Assembly: GCA_024704765.1 (NCBI GenBank)
Contig: JAKMXF010000333.1
Location: forward strand, 62,001-126,000
DNA length: 64,000 nt
Direction: 5' to 3'
DNA from: Oopsacas minuta
Taxonomy: Eukaryota; Animalia; Porifera
This document shows positions 10,860-63,475 of the stretch, piece by piece. Both the position numbers and the translations under genes were made by a program. Position 1 is the first letter of the stretch; each line of letters starts with the position of its first letter. The notes beneath the pieces were generated by a model. The model was not told the DNA's origin, did no database searches, and saw only the letters and a program-made list of their open reading frames with translations.

Positions 10860-12035
10860 ATGTCTACTGAACAAGAAGCAGCTGTTATAGAACAAGAAGC
10901 AGCTATTATAGAAAAAGAAGCAGCTGTTATAGAAAAGGGACCAGCCAAACCAGAAGCTGCAGTTATACCGCATGAATCAGCTGCTATGAAAGAATCTCCA
11001 GACAATGGTCAGGATTCAACACAATCTGTACATACCAATACTAGTTTTACAGATCCACATGATGGCACTATCTATGAATGGGACAATGTACAGAGGGGAT
11101 GGTTTCCCAAGATCAATGAAGACATGATAGCAGCATATACAATGAGTTATGGTTCCTGTCAGGCACAGGGCAATCTCAAACAGGAAGCAGACAAACCTCC
11201 TACCCATGGAGTTTGTAAGAAAAGAGAATTGAGAGAAGAGAGTGACCCGAGTAAAGATATATCCATTAAGAAAGTGAAAAATGAGACTCCTGCATGGTTT
11301 GAAGTCGAAGAGAAACAGAACAAACATGTGTATGTCAGTAATCTCCCCTCCAACACTACAGAGCAGCAGTTCATTGAATTAATGCGTAAATGCGGTGTAA
11401 TAGCAGAGAATGATGACGGGAAACCCAAGATAAAACTATATAGAACTGAAGATGGAGAATTGAAGGGAGACGGATTATGTACATATCTTAAGGTAGATTC
11501 TGTGCCTTATGCAGAGCTCATATTGGATGGTTATGATATGGATGGGCACAAACTGAAGGTACAGTCCGCACAGTTTCAGATGAAGGGAGAGTACGATGCC
11601 TCACTGAAACCTAAGAAAGGGAAGAAAAACAAGAAAAATAGAGCTGACAAATTGGTGAAATGGAAAGATCCATTCTATGACAGACCTAAACATGAGCGTG
11701 TTGTAATAGTCAAGAACTTATTCACCACGAAAGAGATAGCAGCTGATCCTCTACTGGCTGTACAAGTGAAAGAACAGATTAAGACTGAGTGTGAGAAGTG
11801 CGGTAAGGTTAAAAGGGCTATCCTCGCAGAGAGACATCCTGAAGGAGTAGTTTCTGTTATGTTTTTGGAGCATTCAGATGCAGACAAATGCGTACAGATG
11901 ATGCACCATAGGACATTCGGTGGAAGAGTGATGGATTGCAGTCTGTGGGATGGAGTGACATGCTACGTAACTGAGGAGACTGAAGAAGAGCAGAAGAGTA
12001 GGCTAGAGTTATGGGAAGATTATCTCAAAAAGTGA
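10860..12035 (+). CDS. HTATSF1: HIV Tat-specific factor 1 / Cus2 splicing factor (RRM + UHM), single exon, 391 aa
   Basis: DGTIYEWD..RGWFPKI, VYVSNLP..MRKCGVI..KIKLY..GELKGDGLCTYLK and ERVVIVKNLF..HPEGVVSV..RTFGGR are characteristic of TAT-SF1. Confidence 0.93.
   Translation: MSTEQEAAVIEQEAAIIEKEAAVIEKGPAKPEAAVIPHESAAMKESPDNGQDSTQSVHTNTSFTDPHDGTIYEWDNVQRGWFPKINEDMIAAYTMSYGSCQAQGNLKQEADKPPTHGVCKKRELREESDPSKDISIKKVKNETPAWFEVEEKQNKHVYVSNLPSNTTEQQFIELMRKCGVIAENDDGKPKIKLYRTEDGELKGDGLCTYLKVDSVPYAELILDGYDMDGHKLKVQSAQFQMKGEYDASLKPKKGKKNKKNRADKLVKWKDPFYDRPKHERVVIVKNLFTTKEIAADPLLAVQVKEQIKTECEKCGKVKRAILAERHPEGVVSVMFLEHSDADKCVQMMHHRTFGGRVMDCSLWDGVTCYVTEETEEEQKSRLELWEDYLKK
10869..10931 (+). repeat. 3 x 21-bp coding tandem repeat (E[QK]EAA[VI]I)
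   Basis: gaacaagaagcagctgttata / gaacaagaagcagctattata / gaaaaagaagcagctgttata. Confidence 0.9.
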
Positions 12036-13554: not shown

Positions 13555-14039
13555 ATATACGAGCCTTTGGCTCGTCGCTTCGCGATAAACTCGGCACATT
13601 GCGCCTCGAGGTATCCAGTCGTTGAAAGCATGTTTCTACCACAATATTGAAATTTGTATACTTTATGTACCTAGCAGTAAACAAATATTCACAATATGTT
13701 GTTTGCAATAACATATTTGGACTCAGCACACTTGATTACCCCAGTATAGTCATTAAAAGTATGTTTCTACCTCAAATTTGAAATTTGTTTACTTTATATT
13801 CATAAAAACAGCAATAAATTTACATATGATTAATCCAAAAGTGTGAAAATCGGATTCAGCATGTTCGATATGTTTAGTGAAGTTTTATTGAATTCTATTT
13901 ACTTCTTTCATAAACACGATAAATACATTGTTTTGCAACAATTTCAAAATTGCATACCGTAAATCCTTTCCTTGACAACGGACAAACAAACAAACAAATA
14001 AACAAACAAATAAACAGACAACAACAATTGCGATTTAAT
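13555..14039 (+). mobile_element. Non-autonomous dispersed repeat, Helitron/DINE-1-like; copy 1
   Basis: 5' hairpin acgagc-ctttg-gctcgt, then cattgcgcctcgaggtatcca, a shared core (catatgattaatccaaaagtgtg..cggattcagc), a (CAAA/GACA)n tract and caattgcgatttaat. Homologous to 53431-53823 and 61681-62160. The class is inferred from the architecture. Confidence 0.5.
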
Positions 14040-14059
14040 CATTCAATGCTTAGCTTAAG

Positions 14060-14296
14060 ATGGGGATTAGCTTTACTCAGCTCATTATTCTCGGCTTCTT
14101 AGGGGCTTGTTTATTTATTGGACCAAAGAAAATAATTCCCAGAATTTCAGAGACTTTTAGAATAACGAAGCAAGTTTTGGATGAAGAATCAACTAAAGCG
14201 GGACTGGATATGGCTAATAACGGTAAGGACACTAAACCTGATGCAACTGCTCAAGTAACTAATAAATCTAAAAGTGAAGAGAAGAAGGAGGAGTAG
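14060..14296 (+). CDS. tatA: TatA/TatB-family twin-arginine translocase subunit-like protein, 78 aa
   Basis: MGISFTQLIILGFLGACLFIGPKK aligns by eye with E. coli TatA [24 protein letters not shown]: N-terminal TM helix with polar Gln, hinge Gly and KK. A short amphipathic segment (IIPRISETFRITKQVLDEE) and a charged disordered tail ending SKSEEKKEE follow. Confidence 0.7.
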   Translation: MGISFTQLIILGFLGACLFIGPKKIIPRISETFRITKQVLDEESTKAGLDMANNGKDTKPDATAQVTNKSKSEEKKEE

Positions 14297-14856
14297 AATT
14301 TAGATCGTTTAATTTGAATATTTTCTAGTCATAAGATTAATGTCAACTAGTAGAATCTCAGTAATTAATTACAATTGATAGCCTTGTTGAGATTATTAAT
14401 CCACCAGTAATTGAAGTTAATATTTACTGAAAATCAGCGTCTGCTGAAATACTGAAACTTCTATGAATAGTGTAACTGGCTTGCATCGCTTGCTAGATCT
14501 CTGCGTATTATTCAACAGCTAAATTGTATAGAGTTATGAACTCTATGCTACAGAATATACTCATCACTAGAGTCATGACGTAGGGACATTTGTTACATTA
14601 TGGGTTACCTGTGATAGAAATTTCAAACTCCTATCATTCATATTAGCTGAGCACTTGTTAATATTGTCTTTTTCGAAAATCCAAAAGCCGACAATGATTT
14701 CATAATTTCAACATATGTGTGAATTCAAACTTGTCTTAGCCAGAACCATAATGACCCTGTACACAAAATCAGCTCTGTAGGTCTTCCAGTTCCTTCAATC
14801 AATTCTAGACATACAACATAAACATATACTACACAGACATATATACATACAGATGC

Positions 14857-15924: not shown

Positions 15925-17698
15925 TCACACCTGTGGAGATACTTTGGTCACTTTGAAGGGTTTTGGAGAATATACTACTGAGTGAGAAAGTGGGTTTTCT
16001 ATGACGGTAGATTCATTGGCTTTCTCCTTGTCTAATTCAGCAATTGTAGGATTATACCCAGGAATCTGTTTGGGTGAATATGACCATCTCTTCATAAAGA
16101 AATAGAACAAGGGTACTATGAATATCAGGACAAGCAATACGAGTAGAACGAAAACTACAACACCGAATATGACGAGAATGAATTCAGTCTTACCAAAGTT
16201 CAAGATTTGAGGATTCACAGGAGTGATATCAATAGATTCACAGTCACTCCTGTTAGTAGTGGATATGTTGAATCCATCAAAACATGAGCAATTAAATGAC
16301 CCAATTATGTTATTACAATTCTGTTCACAACCTCCATTATCTACCAAGCATTCATTCATGTCATTACAGAACGTTTCATAGAGTTGATACAGAAGATGGT
16401 TGTAACTGTACTTATCCACCAGAACGTGCCTTCTACAATGATAGTAGTTTCGTATGTTCAGACATAGATGAGTGTGAAGACAGTAGTATTACATGTCAAG
16501 GTAACTGTACTAACACGCTTGGTTCCTATAGATGTGATTGTCACGATGGATTCATTAATCTCAATACCACGTATTATCCCCAGGACATACTATTGAATGA
16601 TTGAAGCACTGATAACTGGGGTTACTACAGTTTACATAAAGGCTGGGCTCGTCTACTTGGAGGCTTGGATTTCCTGAGCAATCATTGCTTGAGTCTACAT
16701 ATATTCGGATGCTATACTCGTTTTGTAATATTGAAATCCATTCCATTTCACAGGTGCAATCAAATGAAATATCTCTCATATTTATAGATGATAATTTTGG
16801 GAATTGTTGAAAAATTTCTGGATTCAATAACGCAGGATCATAATTACGTATGTCTATTTCTGTAATGCTCTTCGCTACAGTTAGAGTCGATAAAGTAACT
16901 GATGGATTATTTTTCAAGGATATTTCTTGTAAACCTTCCAGACCGACGAAAGTATACTTTCCAACTTTGGTTATGTCATTACTTGACAGATCCAGATATA
17001 CAAAATTCAGTAAACCCAGGAAAGTACAGTCATTTAACTCATTGATCATATTGCCTTCAAAACTCAAACGTATTAATCTGTTTGTTTCGTTAAAAGAATC
17101 GGGCATTACTTTTGTTATATTTCCATGTTCCCAAAAATATACAATAATTTCTCTAGTCCCCCTATGATACTCCGATCTATGACACCATTTCCTTCCGTTA
17201 ATGATGATTCGAATACTCGTATGTCTTCTAAATGTATATTCTTAGTGAAAAATGGCATTAACTTTGATCCTAATTGATCCGCGTAGAAGTACTCCATGTT
17301 CGGGAAATATGTGAAAAGTCGTTATGATTGATGAATACTTCATTGCCGTTAAATACTATACCTACAATATTGGAATTTATCAAAGAAGTTTCAATATGGC
17401 ACGGTGTGAGGAGCTCATTATTCACAACCAAAGTATCTATATTGCTCGGTAAGCTTAGATTCAATGTAGCGCCTTCTCCCCTTGGATGATGTTAATATTG
17501 AGGGAGACCTTATTTCCTTGAGGACATTCGTACATTTTTGTTGTATTGCATCTGTGTTTGTCCACGAATAAGACATACATAATGAAATATATCATCATAG
17601 CAGGTTATTTCGCTATTCTCACAGTTGCCTTTGACCAGTACAACAAAACAATTTAATATGAGTATTACAAGGATAATTCCCTTGTTAGTTGATATCAT
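15925..17698 (-). pseudogene. LRR-EGF-TM receptor paralogue B (frameshifted, with internal inversion)
   Basis: Fragments 17510-17698 (signal peptide), 17270-17464, 17115-17297, 16561-17106 (LRR/LRRCT) and 15925-16379 (EGF, TM, tail) are colinear with 18114-19895. At least 3 frameshifts; 16380-16563 is inverted. Confidence 0.9.
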
Positions 17699-34858: not shown

Positions 34859-35636
34859 TTCTTTATTACTCGGATAAGACGTATCCCACTACCCTACGGG
34901 AGACATTAAGTACGTACTTACTGAGGTCCTCTTATCAGAATAGAAAGTGTATTAAAATGAATTTACAAGAAGAAGTACGTATTAACCGAGTGTATGTCTT
35001 ATCTGAGTTTTGCTGTGTTTTATATGACTGTGTTTGGAATTATATTAATATATGACTGTTAAACATACATGAATCAGACTACCATATTAATTCTATTTCA
35101 GGCGCTACATAAATACATTCGTGTTCCATGGGGGCCATAATTTGGAACCATTGGCATAACTATATAAAAAGATACATGGCTACTTACTACTGACAACTAC
35201 CGTATTCGTATTCGTTCTAATTCAGACGCAGTTCTAGGTTAAGCGCCTCTGGCGGGTAGAGGGGTTTCTCTGTCCTATTGAAAGGTGCCCTCGACAGAAT
35301 AATTATTTTTGGGGCGCTCACATAGCTCACATAATTAGAGCTTATAGATAGAGTTGCACTTTGTCAAGAATCTGGGGTGAGAATCGGGACTAGTGGTTAG
35401 AATATCTATAAATCAGTAGTATTATGCAATCATGTGACATTTGTAAATTTATCTACTTGCTTGGTACTCAGCGCTTCGTGCCTCGAATTTACTAAAGTAT
35501 AAAATTGCAAATTTGAGTTAATAAATTACTATTTCAACTATTTGTTTACTTTATATTCATAAAAACAACAGAATTTCTATAAGAGAAACTTGAATATGCG
35601 AAATTCGGATTCAGCGTACTTGATTACCCCTATATA

Positions 35637-53430: not shown

Positions 53431-53823
53431 ATAAGACGAGCTTTTGGCTCGTCGCATTGCGCCTCGAGGTATCCATTATTCTCCAACTTGACGGCCCCTT
53501 TGAGTATTATAATATAGATATATTTAGACCAATGTAATTCACAAATATACGTATATGGCATATATATTATTGAATTATTTTGTAAGATCGACCCCCTTTG
53601 TAGCCGTTGAGAGTATCTACGTAAATTTTGAGATTTTGCTAATTTGTTTCCTTTATATTCATAAAAACAAAATAATTTACATATCAACGGACAACCAAAC
53701 AACAATGCGATATTCATACTCAACATACTCGATTACCCTTGTATAGTTGTTGAAAGTATTATTAACCTCAATTTTAGACTAACAAATACAAACAGACAAC
53801 AATTGAGATTTAATAATATAGAT
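53431..53823 (+). mobile_element. Helitron/DINE-1-like dispersed repeat; copy 2
   Basis: Perfect hairpin gacgagc-ttttg-gctcgtc, then cattgcgcctcgaggtatcca; ends caaacagacaacaattgagatttaataatatagat. Confidence 0.5.
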
Positions 53824-57773: not shown

Positions 57774-60700
57774 AAATTTCTCCAATTCATGTATTGCTGT
57801 ATTCCATAGTCAAATTAGATTCTAATCTGCAAGAATTATTGTATTCATTTCATTACCAAGGAGATTTATTTGTTGACAAAGTCTTAATATATACTTGGTT
57901 GCTAGGCAATCAATGTAAACAAATAGCTATAAATAGGATTCAGTTTTCTAGAATATTCCTTTATTGCATAAGCGCTCAGACGACGCAATAAAGGAATATT
58001 CGTTATCGTATTCTATTTTGAAATTGAATTTCGCAATTCTATGTTTCCGCATACTTATGTACCATATTACCTCGAATACCACCCTGGGCGATTATACATT
58101 TCAAACCACCTCGTGAACGAATTTGTAAACACGTTAATTCTATAAAATTGTAGTTTGATCTGAGATAAGTATAATCGATATATTTAATAATACTTAAGAG
58201 TGGTCAGTACGACAAAGAAATACTATTCATTATAAACTTGTAAAGTTCAGGGATTTGGCTAATGGCTAAAACTGCTTGATATGTAGTTACTAACCGCTGT
58301 TACATCGTACGTAAGTCTTCATAACATAATCATACTTATGTGCTTATGTGTCTTTATCCTAACAAATTTTAGATAAACCAAATATAGGGGAAATGACGTT
58401 TCACTGTAGGCAATTATCATTTTTTAGGAGCCTCATCGGGGGGGGGGGCTATTATTCACAAACTTGCCGTGGAGATGAAAAACCCATCCGTATCCATATC
58501 CGTATCCATAGCCAGGCCATTTTTACATGGATATTCATGGACACTGAATGATTTTTCTAAACCTGGGTCCTGTTGCTGTTGGATATCCGTAGATGCCCTA
58601 TAGCCTAGACTCCTTCTTGCTACAGGTATGCTGGTGGAATTCCACTGTGCTCATGCCACTCATTTTTATCCATTTCCGTAGGTCATATTGTGCCACACAA
58701 ATGTTTTGGAACAATATCCACACGAGAGGTACGACACGTCTTATTTTCAACTAATTAGCATTCACATGATTTTTGTTGTGAGATCTCTGTACATCTATGT
58801 AGAAGTGTAAATGGTAGACTTATCTCAGAATCTTGAAATAATTAACTTAGATTGATTTAATGGAATTCCATATATATACTTTTGTGAAATTGATCAGCTG
58901 ATTTATGAATATTCAGTAAATTTGACTTTTCTTACTAAACAAATACTTGAAATATCGAAATATACATAGAGACTTGCTCTTAACGGCTATAATGAGTTAA
59001 CAAAGTATGCTTAATCCGAATATCGCATTTTTAAGTTTCCCATATGTAAATTTGTTGTTGTTTTTATGAATATAAATAATCAGATAATTGTAATCTTGAA
59101 ATAATCGTAGACACTTCCTCTCATCAGATATATAGGGATAACAAAATTTGATTGTTAATTCAATATTTCCCTAAATTTCAGACTTACCAACCCGGAATGA
59201 TTTCATCCTGATTTCGTTATAATATGCGTCGTGACCCTTTAATCCCGAATTCATTTATTTTCTTTCGATGTTCTATGTATTACAGATTTCCCTTAAGCTA
59301 AATGACACGCGAAAATCTGTTAAGACTTAATTGTCAGTGTTTCCTCTAAGAGACCCTGCTATTCTTCGGATTTATTCCCTTTTCAGGGCTATAACCCCCC
59401 TAAAAATTACATTTTGAGCGCTTCCCCCAGGAATTTGTAATCCTTACCTGACGATATTAGGATTGAGTCTGTCTATAGATAAAAGCTCCCGAACTGTTGT
59501 CTGTATGCCCTCCTTCATGCCTTGCTACTTATCATTTGGAGGTAACACTGTCACTTGTGGATTTTAGCTGTATATATCTTCATTGAAGATTCGTAGCAGT
59601 TTGGAAGAAAATCTTCACGAATACCTGGGGATATCCCCGAAAAGGCCCGTAGTTTATTACCTGTATTCCAAATTCGGCTTTGGGTATTGTTTCCTTTTAT
59701 AAAATCCTTCAAAATTGGGCTCTTTTGGTCGCCACACTCATTGAATGCATCTTACATACGTTTACATGTAAAATTTCCTTTTCCTCAATCAATTCCAGAT
59801 ACTAAATTAATCAATTGAATATTGTTATACGTATATAATTTCTATTTCCGTAGACAAGTATAAGTTTCATAATATGAACATACGTAATATATTTATAGTT
59901 GGGTTCCCTTTTCCACTAACAATTATCGTAAATAAGGCTCTCAACCTGGGAACTTTCAAAGTCGAGACTTTTGATTTAGTCCAGGGATTTTCTTGAGTGT
60001 GCAGACGCAAAATCGTGTACACACGACGAGATCGTGACAATTGAGAGCCCAGGAAAAATCCTTTTTTCTACCGCTCTCTCACTTTCATTTCAGCACTACA
60101 CCACTAATATTGACACCCACCAATAGGTAACAATAACAATCATACTTTCTTTCACAATTTAGACTCTTAATTCTGTTGTATATAGTCTATCCAATCATTA
60201 TCAGAATTATTTAACCAGGAATTTCTGCCAGACTGAGACAATTAGAATAACAAATTTGGTCCAAAATATTTATTACTGATTAAAATTATTAGTATTAAAT
60301 ATTTTGCCTAAATTTGTTCATCAAAAAGTTGTGTTTTATATACATATGCGTAGAATAATCGCATTTTCCCAAAAGAGTAGGGAGCCGATACTGGAGATTC
60401 AGCCAATATCAGTGTTCTTTCTAAGGAATCATAATTTTTTCATTTTAGAACTTACCCCCTGGGACTTTCGCTCAAAATTCGATACCAAAAGATATTTGCC
60501 CGAAATTTGATCATATTTGTCAGCTTAATTTTGCTATTTCTACGCTTATGTATATATGCACTAACCGAGCAAAATTATTTCATTAAAAACTAAATATTCA
60601 ATTACTTATCTTGTCAATCCGGCGAATATTTGAATATCTATACAATAACACACCTGAAAGAACTATACGTGTATAACTGTGTTAGTCAACATCATCCCCA

Positions 60701-61680
60701 TTAAATCCCTGATATCCTTCTAATTAGATATTTTCTAGATACAGTTTGCTCATTAAATAGATAACGAACTAATTACATATTCAATTCCAAATTCCACAAA
60801 GCTCAAATGAGATGGAACACTTCTGATAGCATATTTGAATTATACTAGTATGTATTACCCCTGCATGAATATTTCGAACTCTTTAGAGCATAACTCATTG
60901 ACTTATTAGCACTTTAACATTTGTGCCACATGTGGCAGAAGTGGCACATCACTAAAATATTGGCACCAGAATGGATATAGTATGAAAATCATTTGAGATT
61001 CACTAAACTCACTTGTAAATATTTGTATAGTTGGAAATATGTCTCAATAAATCTCCCTTGGTATTATGTCTCAATAGCCTCCTGAAAAATTAATTAAGGC
61101 AATATTCACGGAAACACGACAGCTCTTATAATTTCATTTGTGACAATCAGCAACAGCGAGGCGTGTATGAAATGTTCAATAATGAAGACTACTTCTTCAT
61201 TATTGATGAACAACGCGTAGTAGACGAAACAATTCGACTTTCTTTTATTATGCAATTTATTAAGTTGAGCGAAATCCATTTCGTCAGTTATTCGTCGCAT
61301 GGAAATTTGTCGCCGGAACATACGTCATTTATGTCATTTTGAGTGACTTTTGACTTGTTTGGAGTGGGTATTCACCCTAATTATTTCCTATACGCCTGCT
61401 CGCATGTTGTTTGTGCTGTAAGGAGAGACAGCTGCTTTTGCTGGCAACCTCTATATTACTATATATTCTTCAATTTCTGTAATAATTTTTTGCGTGGCTA
61501 CTTGCTAGCTAACCCACTTGCACTTTCTGTATCCCATCATTAACCAAAATAGGAAAAGTCATACCTACAAGTAAAGGCTTTGTCTATTGGTATTTCCCCT
61601 TAATTTGATACATCCTATATTTGGATGATTTTACTAAGCATCTTTCGGCGACAAATTTTCAGGAATTTCTTTTTAAATAT

Positions 61681-62160
61681 AACGAGACAACGGCTCGTGG
61701 CTTCGCGATGAACTCGGCGTATTGCGCCTCGAGGTATCCACCATTCTCCAAATTGACACCCCTTTGAGTATTTAAATATAGATATATACTTAAAACAATG
61801 TAATTCACAAATATACGTTTATGGCATATATGTTATTGAATTATTTTGTAAGATCAATCCCCTTTGTAGCTGTTCAGGCCCAGTATCTACGTATTTTTGA
61901 GATTTGGATAATTTGTTTACTTTATATTCATAAATACAACAATAAATTTATATATGATTAATCCAAAAGTGTGTGTGAATATCGGTTTCAGTATGTTCGA
62001 TATATTTAGTGAAGTTTTATTGAATTCTATTTACTTCCTTGATAAACACGATAAATACATAGTTATGCGACAATTTCAAAATTGCACATCGTAAATCTTT
62101 TCCTTGACAACGGACGAATAAACAGACAAACAGACAACAATTGAGACTTAATAATATAGG
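61681..62160 (+). mobile_element. Helitron/DINE-1-like dispersed repeat; copy 3
   Basis: gcttcgcgatgaactcggcgtattgcgcctcgaggtatcca start, shared core, ends acagacaaacagacaacaattgagacttaataatata; colinear with 13555-14039. Confidence 0.5.
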
Positions 62161-63039
62161 TTAACCCCTCCCATTAATGTGTTTTCAGGCGATTCCAAGC
62201 ATTGGCGCGGGTTTTAGGAAACAAAATTGTTTCTCTTTAGTAGCAGCAATTTCCCATGGTGAGCCTGAGGGCTCTCCATGGGAAATTGCTGCTACTTCTT
62301 GTCTAAATTTCGGTCCCCGCCTCAAAACTTGGGGATCCAAACCCCCAGGTACCCAAACTTAGCACCTATTATTCAATTTACTCATTCTGATGTGTATTCA
62401 CTTAAATTGACTTCGCTCAAATGGGATTCGCTCAAATGGGATTCGCTCAACTGAGTTTCACGAGTTATACAGGTTGTTCTGAGCACGCTCCTAGCTTTCC
62501 TCCTCTCAAAATTTCATACGCCTAAATGAGTAAATTAGCGTTATGGTATTGGGAGATATCTTCAACTTTTAAGCTCCTAAATATCTCTTGTATTCTTCTA
62601 GAAATTAATTAAAACCGCTAATCATCCATAATTCTTAATATATTAATACACGTTAGACAATTTCAAAGTTGTGAAAATGTATCCAGCATATACATCTAAA
62701 TGATTAATCATATATGTATATGTATACAGGCGCGCCACCATGAGGAGTGGCAAAGCGGGGGCAGTTAATTTTGAAGGGGGCAGTTTTTCATGCAATCATA
62801 TCTAAATACAGGTCCATAACCACCCAAACGCTGCTAAATTCTAGTTTGTGACGTTTGACTCGTGCTCAATCGGACTGCACAAAGTATTGTGTCGTCGGCC
62901 CTGATATAACCATATACATAATATCCAATTAAATGAAGAAACTTTCATTTTACATCACTTAATTCTTCATTGAATATCTCATGTACATAAAATTACATAT
63001 GAGAAACTTTGGTTCCTGAGTATAAATATGTGTTCATCG

Positions 63040-63475
63040 TGTTTATCAAGGATGTAAACAGAATTCTATATAACTTGATTAAATATATCCAACATGCTGA
63101 ATCCGATTTTCGTACTTTTGGATTAATCATATGTAAATTTATTGTTGTTTTTTAGAATATAAGTAAACAAATAGTTGAAATCTCAAAATATACGTAGAGA
63201 CGTGCTCTTAACAGCTGCAATGTGGTAACCAAGTTAGCTGAATCCGAATTCCGCTTTCTCAAGTTTCTCATGAGCAAGTTAATTGTCGTATTTATGAATA
63301 TTAAATAAACAAATAGTTGAAATCTCAAATTTACTTAGAGAATTGCTCTCAACAGAAATATAGGGGTAATCAAGTACGCTGAATCTGAATGTCGCATTTT
63401 CATGTTTCTCATATGCGAATTTTTGTTATTTTTGTGAATATAAAGTAAGCAAATAGTTGAAATATATATTTTTAT
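63040..63475. repeat. Cluster of partial copies of the same repeat core in reverse orientation
   Basis: aaacaaatagttgaaatctcaaa and gctgaatccga recur three times. Confidence 0.7.

Follow-up and report, generated by a model that had tools for sequence, protein, structure and literature searches.

The locus lies in the window, the whole 64,000-nucleotide stretch of DNA analyzed here, which comes from the glass sponge Oopsacas minuta (assembly GCA_024704765.1, contig JAKMXF010000333.1, 301 kb). Translation of open reading frames (ORFs) gave an ATG-initiated, complete single-exon coding sequence (CDS) of 78 codons plus a stop at 14060..14296 of the plus strand. The predicted product looks like a 78–amino acid (aa) single-pass membrane protein. 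Since an in-frame TAG lies just upstream of the ATG (14051-14053), the protein can carry no N-terminal extension or presequence unless splicing supplies one, and it begins with the hydrophobic segment. The original prediction had read this ORF as a stand-alone subunit of the TatA/B type, a candidate relic of a mitochondrial twin-arginine translocase (Tat), and the layout on which that reading was based (Q7, an F19-I20-G21-P22-K23-K24 hinge, a helix, and a charged tail within 78 aa) is present. The features of the locus are as follows:

14051..14053, plus strand: in-frame upstream stop TAG, 9 nt 5′ of the ATG
14060..14296, plus strand: TatA/B-like CDS (ORF, orthologs, purifying selection, RNA-like coverage)
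14078..14080, plus strand: Q7 codon, polar residue at the N-terminal end of the transmembrane (TM) helix; nearly every family member has E or Q here
14081..14119, plus strand: residues 8-20, 13-residue apolar stretch of the short TM helix (alignment, AF2)
14120..14131, plus strand: hinge G21-P22-K23-K24, with Gly21 as in E. coli TatA and TatB
14126..14179, plus strand: residues 23-40, amphipathic net-positive helix (18-residue hydrophobic moment 0.56)
14180..14188, plus strand: residues 41-43 (D-E-E), an acidic patch that follows the amphipathic helix and has invariant E42 and E43 in sponges
14189..14293, plus strand: residues 44-78, charged and poorly conserved tail (pLDDT below 50)
14363..14386, plus strand: putative 3′ end, weakly indicated by AATTAA at 14363-14368 and by an RNA-like contig whose end at 14386 is adapter-tagged

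Upstream of the gene lies an HTATSF1-like RRM ORF consisting of a single 391-codon exon (10860-12035; PF00076, E = 7.6e-14), and downstream are EGF and LRR ORFs on the minus strand (15925-17106), so that the placement between HTATSF1 and an LRR cluster given in the original prediction is correct. Its description of AT-rich, host-like surroundings is likewise borne out: GC content around 14060-14296 is 0.30 to 0.32, matching the remainder of the window, and the window ORF list contains no tatB- or tatC-like ORF nearby. The GenBank gene calls for the contig contain nothing between the RRM gene and the EGF gene. The ORF (7201-7437 of L090) is therefore unannotated and missing from the published O. 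minuta gene set.

Four public sequencing runs from one sample contain the locus, and the type of each run was assigned from its coverage pattern alone. In three runs, depth was flat and DNA-like (21 to 49 over 14146-14342), at the single-copy level over the TatA/B-like ORF and continuous with the flanks. In run X4, depth over the same interval was 38,567, ~1000-fold higher than in the DNA-like runs; it reached thousands over the RRM ORF, was 0 in flanking intergenic bins, and returned to 0 by 14540. The kind of run being unrecorded, X4 was read as RNA because of this pattern, which is consistent with the RNA-seq library described for the O. minuta genome project. The coverage strongly indicates, short of proof, that the TatA/B-like gene is transcribed, apparently at a high level. 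The AATTAA at 14363 could be its poly(A) signal.

A very high-copy interspersed repeat is located directly 5′ of the gene (13555-13950), with a word depth of 2e4 to 3.7e5 in the DNA-like runs compared to ~50 for single-copy sequence. Partial copies of this repeat are found at 35540-35615, 53448-53684, 59007-59085, 61670-62092, and 63028-63454. Between the interspersed repeat and the ORF, there is an (AAAC)n-like simple repeat (13974-14024). Together, these two elements hide the 5′ end of the TatA/B-like transcript.

Orthologs and the holozoan family

A search of 5.8 billion proteins revealed five orthologs of 71 to 84 aa, which are 66 to 71% identical to the window protein and are encoded on contigs of 0.8 to 2.4 Mb. 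When 1.8 billion representatives were searched exhaustively with phmmer, one further ortholog with 58% identity appeared. Over the sponge orthologs, identity ranges from 58 to 76%, residues 1-48 are near-invariant, and residues 10-24 are invariant. Pairwise comparison with three glass-sponge orthologs over codons 1-48 gave dN/dS of 0.04 to 0.13 at dS of 1.1 to 1.9, i.e., near saturation. The window shares with at least three other glass-sponge assemblies (L001, L002, and L087) the position of an HTATSF1-like RRM gene 5′ of the TatA/B-like gene. Thus, the orthologs in related species that the original prediction called for were found, and 14060-14296 is a real nuclear gene of O. minuta, under strong purifying selection across glass sponges that are deeply diverged from one another. 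The downstream neighbor varies: ArfGAP or RCC1 genes occupy this position in other glass sponges, and the EGF/LRR cluster does so in the O. minuta window.

Exhaustive and profile protein searches extended the family to proteins of 66 to 122 aa from glass sponges, eight choanoflagellates (including Didymoeca, Diaphanoeca, Hartaetosiga balthica, H. gracilis, Bicosta, Stephanoeca, and Microstomoeca), two ichthyosporeans, and one environmental eukaryote; two environmental contigs are among the sources. The ichthyosporean members come from Creolimax and Sphaeroforma arctica (XP_014160378, annotated as “hypothetical”); the Sphaeroforma gene spreads 122 codons over 2.2 kb and therefore contains introns. 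The family consensus is MP(L/I)G(F/L)GE..(I/L)G.VGA..F.GPK(K/R)..P(K/R).AET.K.AR, with little or no variation among members at G12, G15, and A16. The searches of 1.8 and 5.8 billion proteins yielded no bacterial, other-animal, fungal, or filasterean protein at E ≤ 0.1, and opening the length limits to 67 to 213 aa revealed no longer kin, presequence-bearing forms, or bacterial bridge. These protein searches found no family member in Oscarella or Monosiga, the holozoans with documented tatC; since small ORFs are easily missed in proteomes, this absence is weak evidence.

The environmental member P0011 has a 30-residue Arg/Ser-rich N-terminal extension with zero acidic residues, which ends where the other members start. 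Its ORF begins 8 nt after a Cmc1 gene (contig L088). A metagenome scan with P0011 returned only L091, its own unspliced counterpart, and one spurious locus, L092.

Overall, the family is conserved, nuclear, and previously undescribed. Later reviews, up to September 2026, contained nothing further on holozoans, and targeted full-text searches returned no report of the family. Because the O. minuta ORF is missing from the annotation and the Sphaeroforma member is only “hypothetical,” the family is invisible to routine proteome-based surveys.

Comparison with TatA and TatB

To the profile check proposed in the original prediction, the family gave a mixed answer: Tat models were consistently at the top, but the scores were low. 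The window protein had no match in Pfam, and its sole match in NCBIfam was TIGR01411 (E = 0.025, 14.1 bits compared to a cut-off of 53.9). TIGR01411 was the only match for four of the six sponge proteins. Among the 11 non-sponge members, TatA/E or TatB was the best of 18,950 NCBIfam models for nine (P0007, P0009, P0010, and P0014-P0019), with alignments that always begin at residue 3. P0008 matched only Tat models, more weakly and from residue 30-31, in keeping with its N-terminal extension, while P0011 had no NCBIfam Tat match. The best NCBIfam score in the family was obtained with TIGR01410 tatB (E = 3.6e-5); P0019, from Microstomoeca, reached 24.2 bits with this model against a cut-off of 56.5, and 20.0 bits with Pfam PF02416, whose gathering score is 21. 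None of the tested members passed the curated cut-offs of PF02416, TIGR01410, or TIGR01411.

When the family profile was compared to all Protein Data Bank (PDB) sequences, the TatB homolog 9e02_F ranked first (E = 3.3e-5) and chloroplast TatA 7b7o ranked second, both aligned N terminus to N terminus. TatA and TatB reference profiles were built from 70 and 74 distinct sequences, respectively, taken only from tatABC loci of Enterobacterales and Vibrio and therefore narrow. In hhalign, the family core matched the TatB profile with a probability of 90.1% (E = 1.6e-6, score 36.5), with residues 3-25 placed on TatB residues 4-25. One hundred shuffles that preserved the helix/hinge/amphipathic layout scored 16.1 ± 3.7, with a maximum of 25.6, and none reached 36.5 (z = 5.6). 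Likewise, none of 100 shuffles of the first 26 columns did so (14.1 ± 3.4; z = 6.6). The TatB match thus exceeds what a hydrophobic helix followed by charges would produce. In an ESM-Atlas protein language model search, which we treat as a lead only, PF02416 families made up 82 of the 100 nearest clusters, with a top score of 0.87. Two other matches were set aside. A single-sequence phmmer search of the PDB returned only designed helical repeat proteins, taken as spurious, and Pfam YMF19 (plant ATP8; E ~0.06 in two members) was considered noise, given that atp8 is present in O. minuta mtDNA and Tat matches dominate. The aligned Tat-like core spans about 22 to 45 residues; with ~25 to 45 alignable residues, phylogeny cannot resolve an alphaproteobacterial origin.

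A structural model obtained by AF2 with the family alignment contains a helix at residues 5-20 (pLDDT of about 85), a break at G21/P22, and a helix at residues 22-55; only the first helix is modeled with good confidence, pLDDT being about 61 for residues 21-40 and 59 on average. A Foldseek search of the PDB with this model gave 0 matches. In VIA structure alignment, all Z values were ≤3.4, with TatB 2mi2 in 8th and TatA 2lzs in 11th place among generic helices, i.e., without discrimination.

Features common to the family and bacterial TatA/TatB/TatE (PF02416; TIGR01410 and TIGR01411) are a G-x-x-(E/Q) at the N terminus, a very short apolar helix, a hinge in which Gly21 precedes Pro and Lys-Lys/Arg, a basic amphipathic helix, and a variable tail. 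The polar residue and hinge of the family (E/Q7 and G21-P22) correspond to Q8 and G21 in E. coli TatA and to E8 and G21-P22 in TatB. The helix of TatA/B proteins has only 12 consecutive hydrophobic residues, a length described as strictly conserved and mechanistically important (PMC9424591). The apolar run is 12 residues long in E. coli TatA and TatB, compared to 13 in the sponge/holozoan family (residues 8-20 in the window protein; 13 residues in 14 of 18 members); E. coli TatA variants with one additional hydrophobic residue are tolerated (PMC9424591). The hydrophobic moment of the amphipathic helix is 0.45 to 0.58 in the family, 0.44 in E. coli TatA, and 0.55 in E. coli TatB. An acidic patch after this helix, described for TatA (PMC9424591), is likewise present in sponge members, with D41-E42-E43-S44 opposite S44-D45-D46-E47 of E. 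coli TatA in the hhalign register, and the family size of 66 to 122 aa is similar to that of TatA. The original prediction had also stated that the conserved Phe is lacking. In the hhalign register, E. coli F39 is indeed opposite T36; three residues before T36, however, the family has an invariant F33, so the statement is only partly right.

The family also differs from its bacterial counterparts. Its hinge reads GPKK-I-I-P instead of the canonical GPKKLP, with one extra residue between KK/KR and Pro, and its genes lie in eukaryotic nuclei without an adjacent tatC, no tatC being known in Oopsacas. The N terminus and the Gly-Pro hinge resemble TatB and plant Tha4, while the size and the acidic patch resemble TatA; the family cannot be assigned to one or the other. 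Overall, the profile, shuffling, and alignment results indicate that the family is probably a divergent relative of bacterial and organellar TatA/TatB. What is new is thus a probable nuclear holozoan variant of the TatA/B kind whose Tat homology falls below curated thresholds. The original prediction is partly supported: several independent sequence tests agree on a TatA/B-like product, and the gene is a genuine nuclear gene of an animal.

Proposed mitochondrial origin, TatC, and alternative explanations

The complete mtDNA of O. minuta (KR709158) encodes 14 proteins (atp6, 8, and 9; cob; cox1-3; nad1-6 and nad4L) and no tatC (PMC4520895). Among animals, tatC has been reported only in Oscarellidae (PMC5633667, a review by the group that discovered Oscarella tatC). 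Within Holozoa, a mitochondrial tatC is on record for Monosiga, for Oscarellidae, and for Sphaerothecum, an ichthyosporean, and filastereans lack it; none of the species with documented tatC is among those in which a family member was found. Amoebidium, a sequenced relative within Ichthyophonida, has no tatC (table in PMC7027106). The original prediction had suggested a nuclear-encoded partner for an animal mitochondrial TatC. O. minuta is not an oscarellid, and since its mtDNA lacks tatC, this part of the prediction is unsupported for O. minuta. It is quite unlikely that the family protein works with a TatC in this sponge, and about equally unlikely that a TatC has been overlooked there, either nuclear or divergent beyond recognition. 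Action without TatC, or with another receptor, is more likely than action with an overlooked TatC. A relic Tat function in O. minuta is possible, but it would need an unrecognized TatC or a TatC-independent mode.

Where related subunits are encoded has been surveyed before. According to Petru et al. 2018, mitochondrial tatA and tatC are found only in mtDNA, with tatA never found in the nucleus; opisthokonts including Oscarella are classed as TatC-only; the occurrence of nuclear TatB but never nuclear TatA is “a mystery”; and TatC-only systems failed to complement E. coli (PMC6251230). Compared by description only, the mitochondrion-encoded TatA of jakobids, cryptophytes, and ochrophytes lacks a presequence, as the sponge protein does (PMC6251230). 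It would be the same organellar protein by descent, whereas its genes are mtDNA-borne and always accompanied by tatC (PMC6251230). That a nuclear gene can provide mitochondria with a subunit of the TatA/B type is known from plants, in which a nuclear-encoded mitochondrial TatB (Carrie et al. 2016, as cited in PMC6251230 and PMC8662606) and a dual-targeted TatA (bioRxiv 10.1101/2020.04.06.026997) have been described. As these accounts describe them, the plant proteins have a greater length and targeting peptides and act beside an mtDNA-encoded TatC, whereas the window protein has 78 aa and no extension. In the same accounts, nuclear mitochondrial TatB is reported from plants, stramenopiles, and cryptists, not from opisthokonts.

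TatA/B homology, together with restriction to eukaryotes that have tatC-keeping relatives, points to a nucleus-transferred descendant of mitochondrial TatA/B. The explanation we somewhat favor, taken as a whole, is that the window gene is a real nuclear holozoan relative of TatA/B of mitochondrial ancestry whose product has a TatA/B-type role in the inner membrane. A TatA/B gene of the mitochondrial ancestor would have been transferred to the nucleus prior to the divergence of the holozoan lineages. The protein would reside in the mitochondrial inner membrane, its N terminus facing outward and its amphipathic helix lying on the matrix side; such a location is, in our view, slightly better than an even guess. 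The P0011 extension and the Cmc1 adjacency provide a thin hint of mitochondria. Family members from sponges, choanoflagellates, and ichthyosporeans lack a presequence. The internal targeting signal of Bcs1 consists of a transmembrane helix and a basic amphipathic helix, and presequence-less family members have the same two-element arrangement; by this targeting analogy, which implies no sequence relationship, the two helices could serve as an internal import signal. Once inserted, the protein may oligomerize and thin the membrane, which would correspond to the TatA/B-type step in the passage of a folded protein, the Rieske Fe-S protein for instance.

Several other explanations of the gene have to be weighed. 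Recent bacterial horizontal transfer, which the original prediction had offered as its second reading, or assembly contamination, including a chimeric contig, could be suspected, as the nearest named families are bacterial. The ORF, however, is located on a 301-kb sponge contig between animal genes with host-like GC; the same upstream neighbor is kept in four sponge assemblies; DNA-like depth is single-copy and continuous with the flanks; and searches of 1.8 and 5.8 billion sequences produced eukaryotic relatives, intron-bearing or transcript-derived, with zero bacterial matches. Family distribution and synteny thus exclude contamination and recent bacterial transfer, leaving them a negligible probability. 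A secreted peptide precursor, in which a cleavable signal peptide precedes a basic amphipathic secreted peptide, would fit the 13-residue hydrophobic core after a short N-region, which has the length of a signal peptide. Signal peptides evolve fast, whereas here conservation peaks in the hydrophobic segment: sponges show no variation at residues 10-24 with dS > 1, G12, G15, and A16 are conserved across Holozoa, and the C-terminal “mature” part is the least conserved. We therefore regard this possibility as very improbable.

Convergence is harder to dismiss, though still unlikely. The protein would then be an unrelated small membrane protein, e.g., a signal-anchored protein of the mitochondrial outer membrane or the endoplasmic reticulum. 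Signal anchors, too, typically combine a short helix with basic residues after it; moreover, every Tat match lies below curated cut-offs over a short aligned stretch, and the structure searches were uninformative (0 Foldseek matches; VIA Z ≤ 3.4). Against this, four independent resources each rank Tat first and do so in one constant register, the hhalign score is 5.6 SD above layout-preserving shuffles with 0 of 100 reaching it, and the hinge Gly (21) and polar residue (7/8) occupy the positions that they have in TatA/B. A somewhat more likely alternative, which we nevertheless do not prefer, accepts descent from Tat and assumes a changed function: the protein would have no Tat translocase role in Holozoa, or at least in glass sponges, and could instead be a small subunit with a structural or assembly role in a different mitochondrial membrane complex. 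It differs from the explanation favored above only in denying translocation-type activity. Strong purifying selection and apparently high expression in a sponge whose mtDNA lacks tatC speak for such a change, as do the presence of members in Ichthyophonida, whose sequenced relative Amoebidium shows no tatC (PMC7027106), and the position of one member next to the gene for Cmc1, a cytochrome oxidase assembly factor. Yet, what the family has retained is exactly the set of features linked to the Tat mechanism, namely a polar E/Q ahead of a very short apolar helix, then the hinge and an amphipathic helix, and no result implicates another complex.

If the favored reading of a TatA/B-type inner-membrane protein is correct, then in choanoflagellates and ichthyosporeans, the family would be the missing partner of mitochondrially encoded TatC in TatC-only systems. 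The family sits in holozoan groups where mitochondrial tatC persists. The failure of TatC-only systems to complement E. coli left open whether such systems work, and the family offers a concrete candidate, identified by sequence, for the missing subunit. In a more tentative extension, which we consider possible but hold to be less probable than the explanation it builds on, holozoan TatC-only systems are two-component systems with a nuclear TatA/B subunit, and glass sponges, in which TatC was lost, was relocated, or diverged radically, have since kept this subunit over hundreds of millions of years. If true, this would imply either a TatC-independent TatA/B activity or the first nuclear or cryptic mitochondrial TatC, and it would contradict the statement in the field that no nuclear transfer of TatA ever took place. 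The strong selection on the gene of a glass sponge with no known tatC is a separate puzzle, which bears on the replacement of Tat by Bcs1 in Rieske assembly.

A last observation concerns the gene order around the environmental member. On the plus strand of L088 (50-561), the Cmc1 gene is followed by the TatA/B-like ORF, and a convergent Pkr1 gene is located at 697-1260 on the minus strand. Clusters of the Pkr1 neighbor span fungi, diatoms, and plants, and we do not claim P0011 as a fungal family member. L088 is a spliced, transcript-derived contig and L091 is its unspliced counterpart; Cmc1 and the TatA/B-like gene may therefore share a bicistronic transcript.
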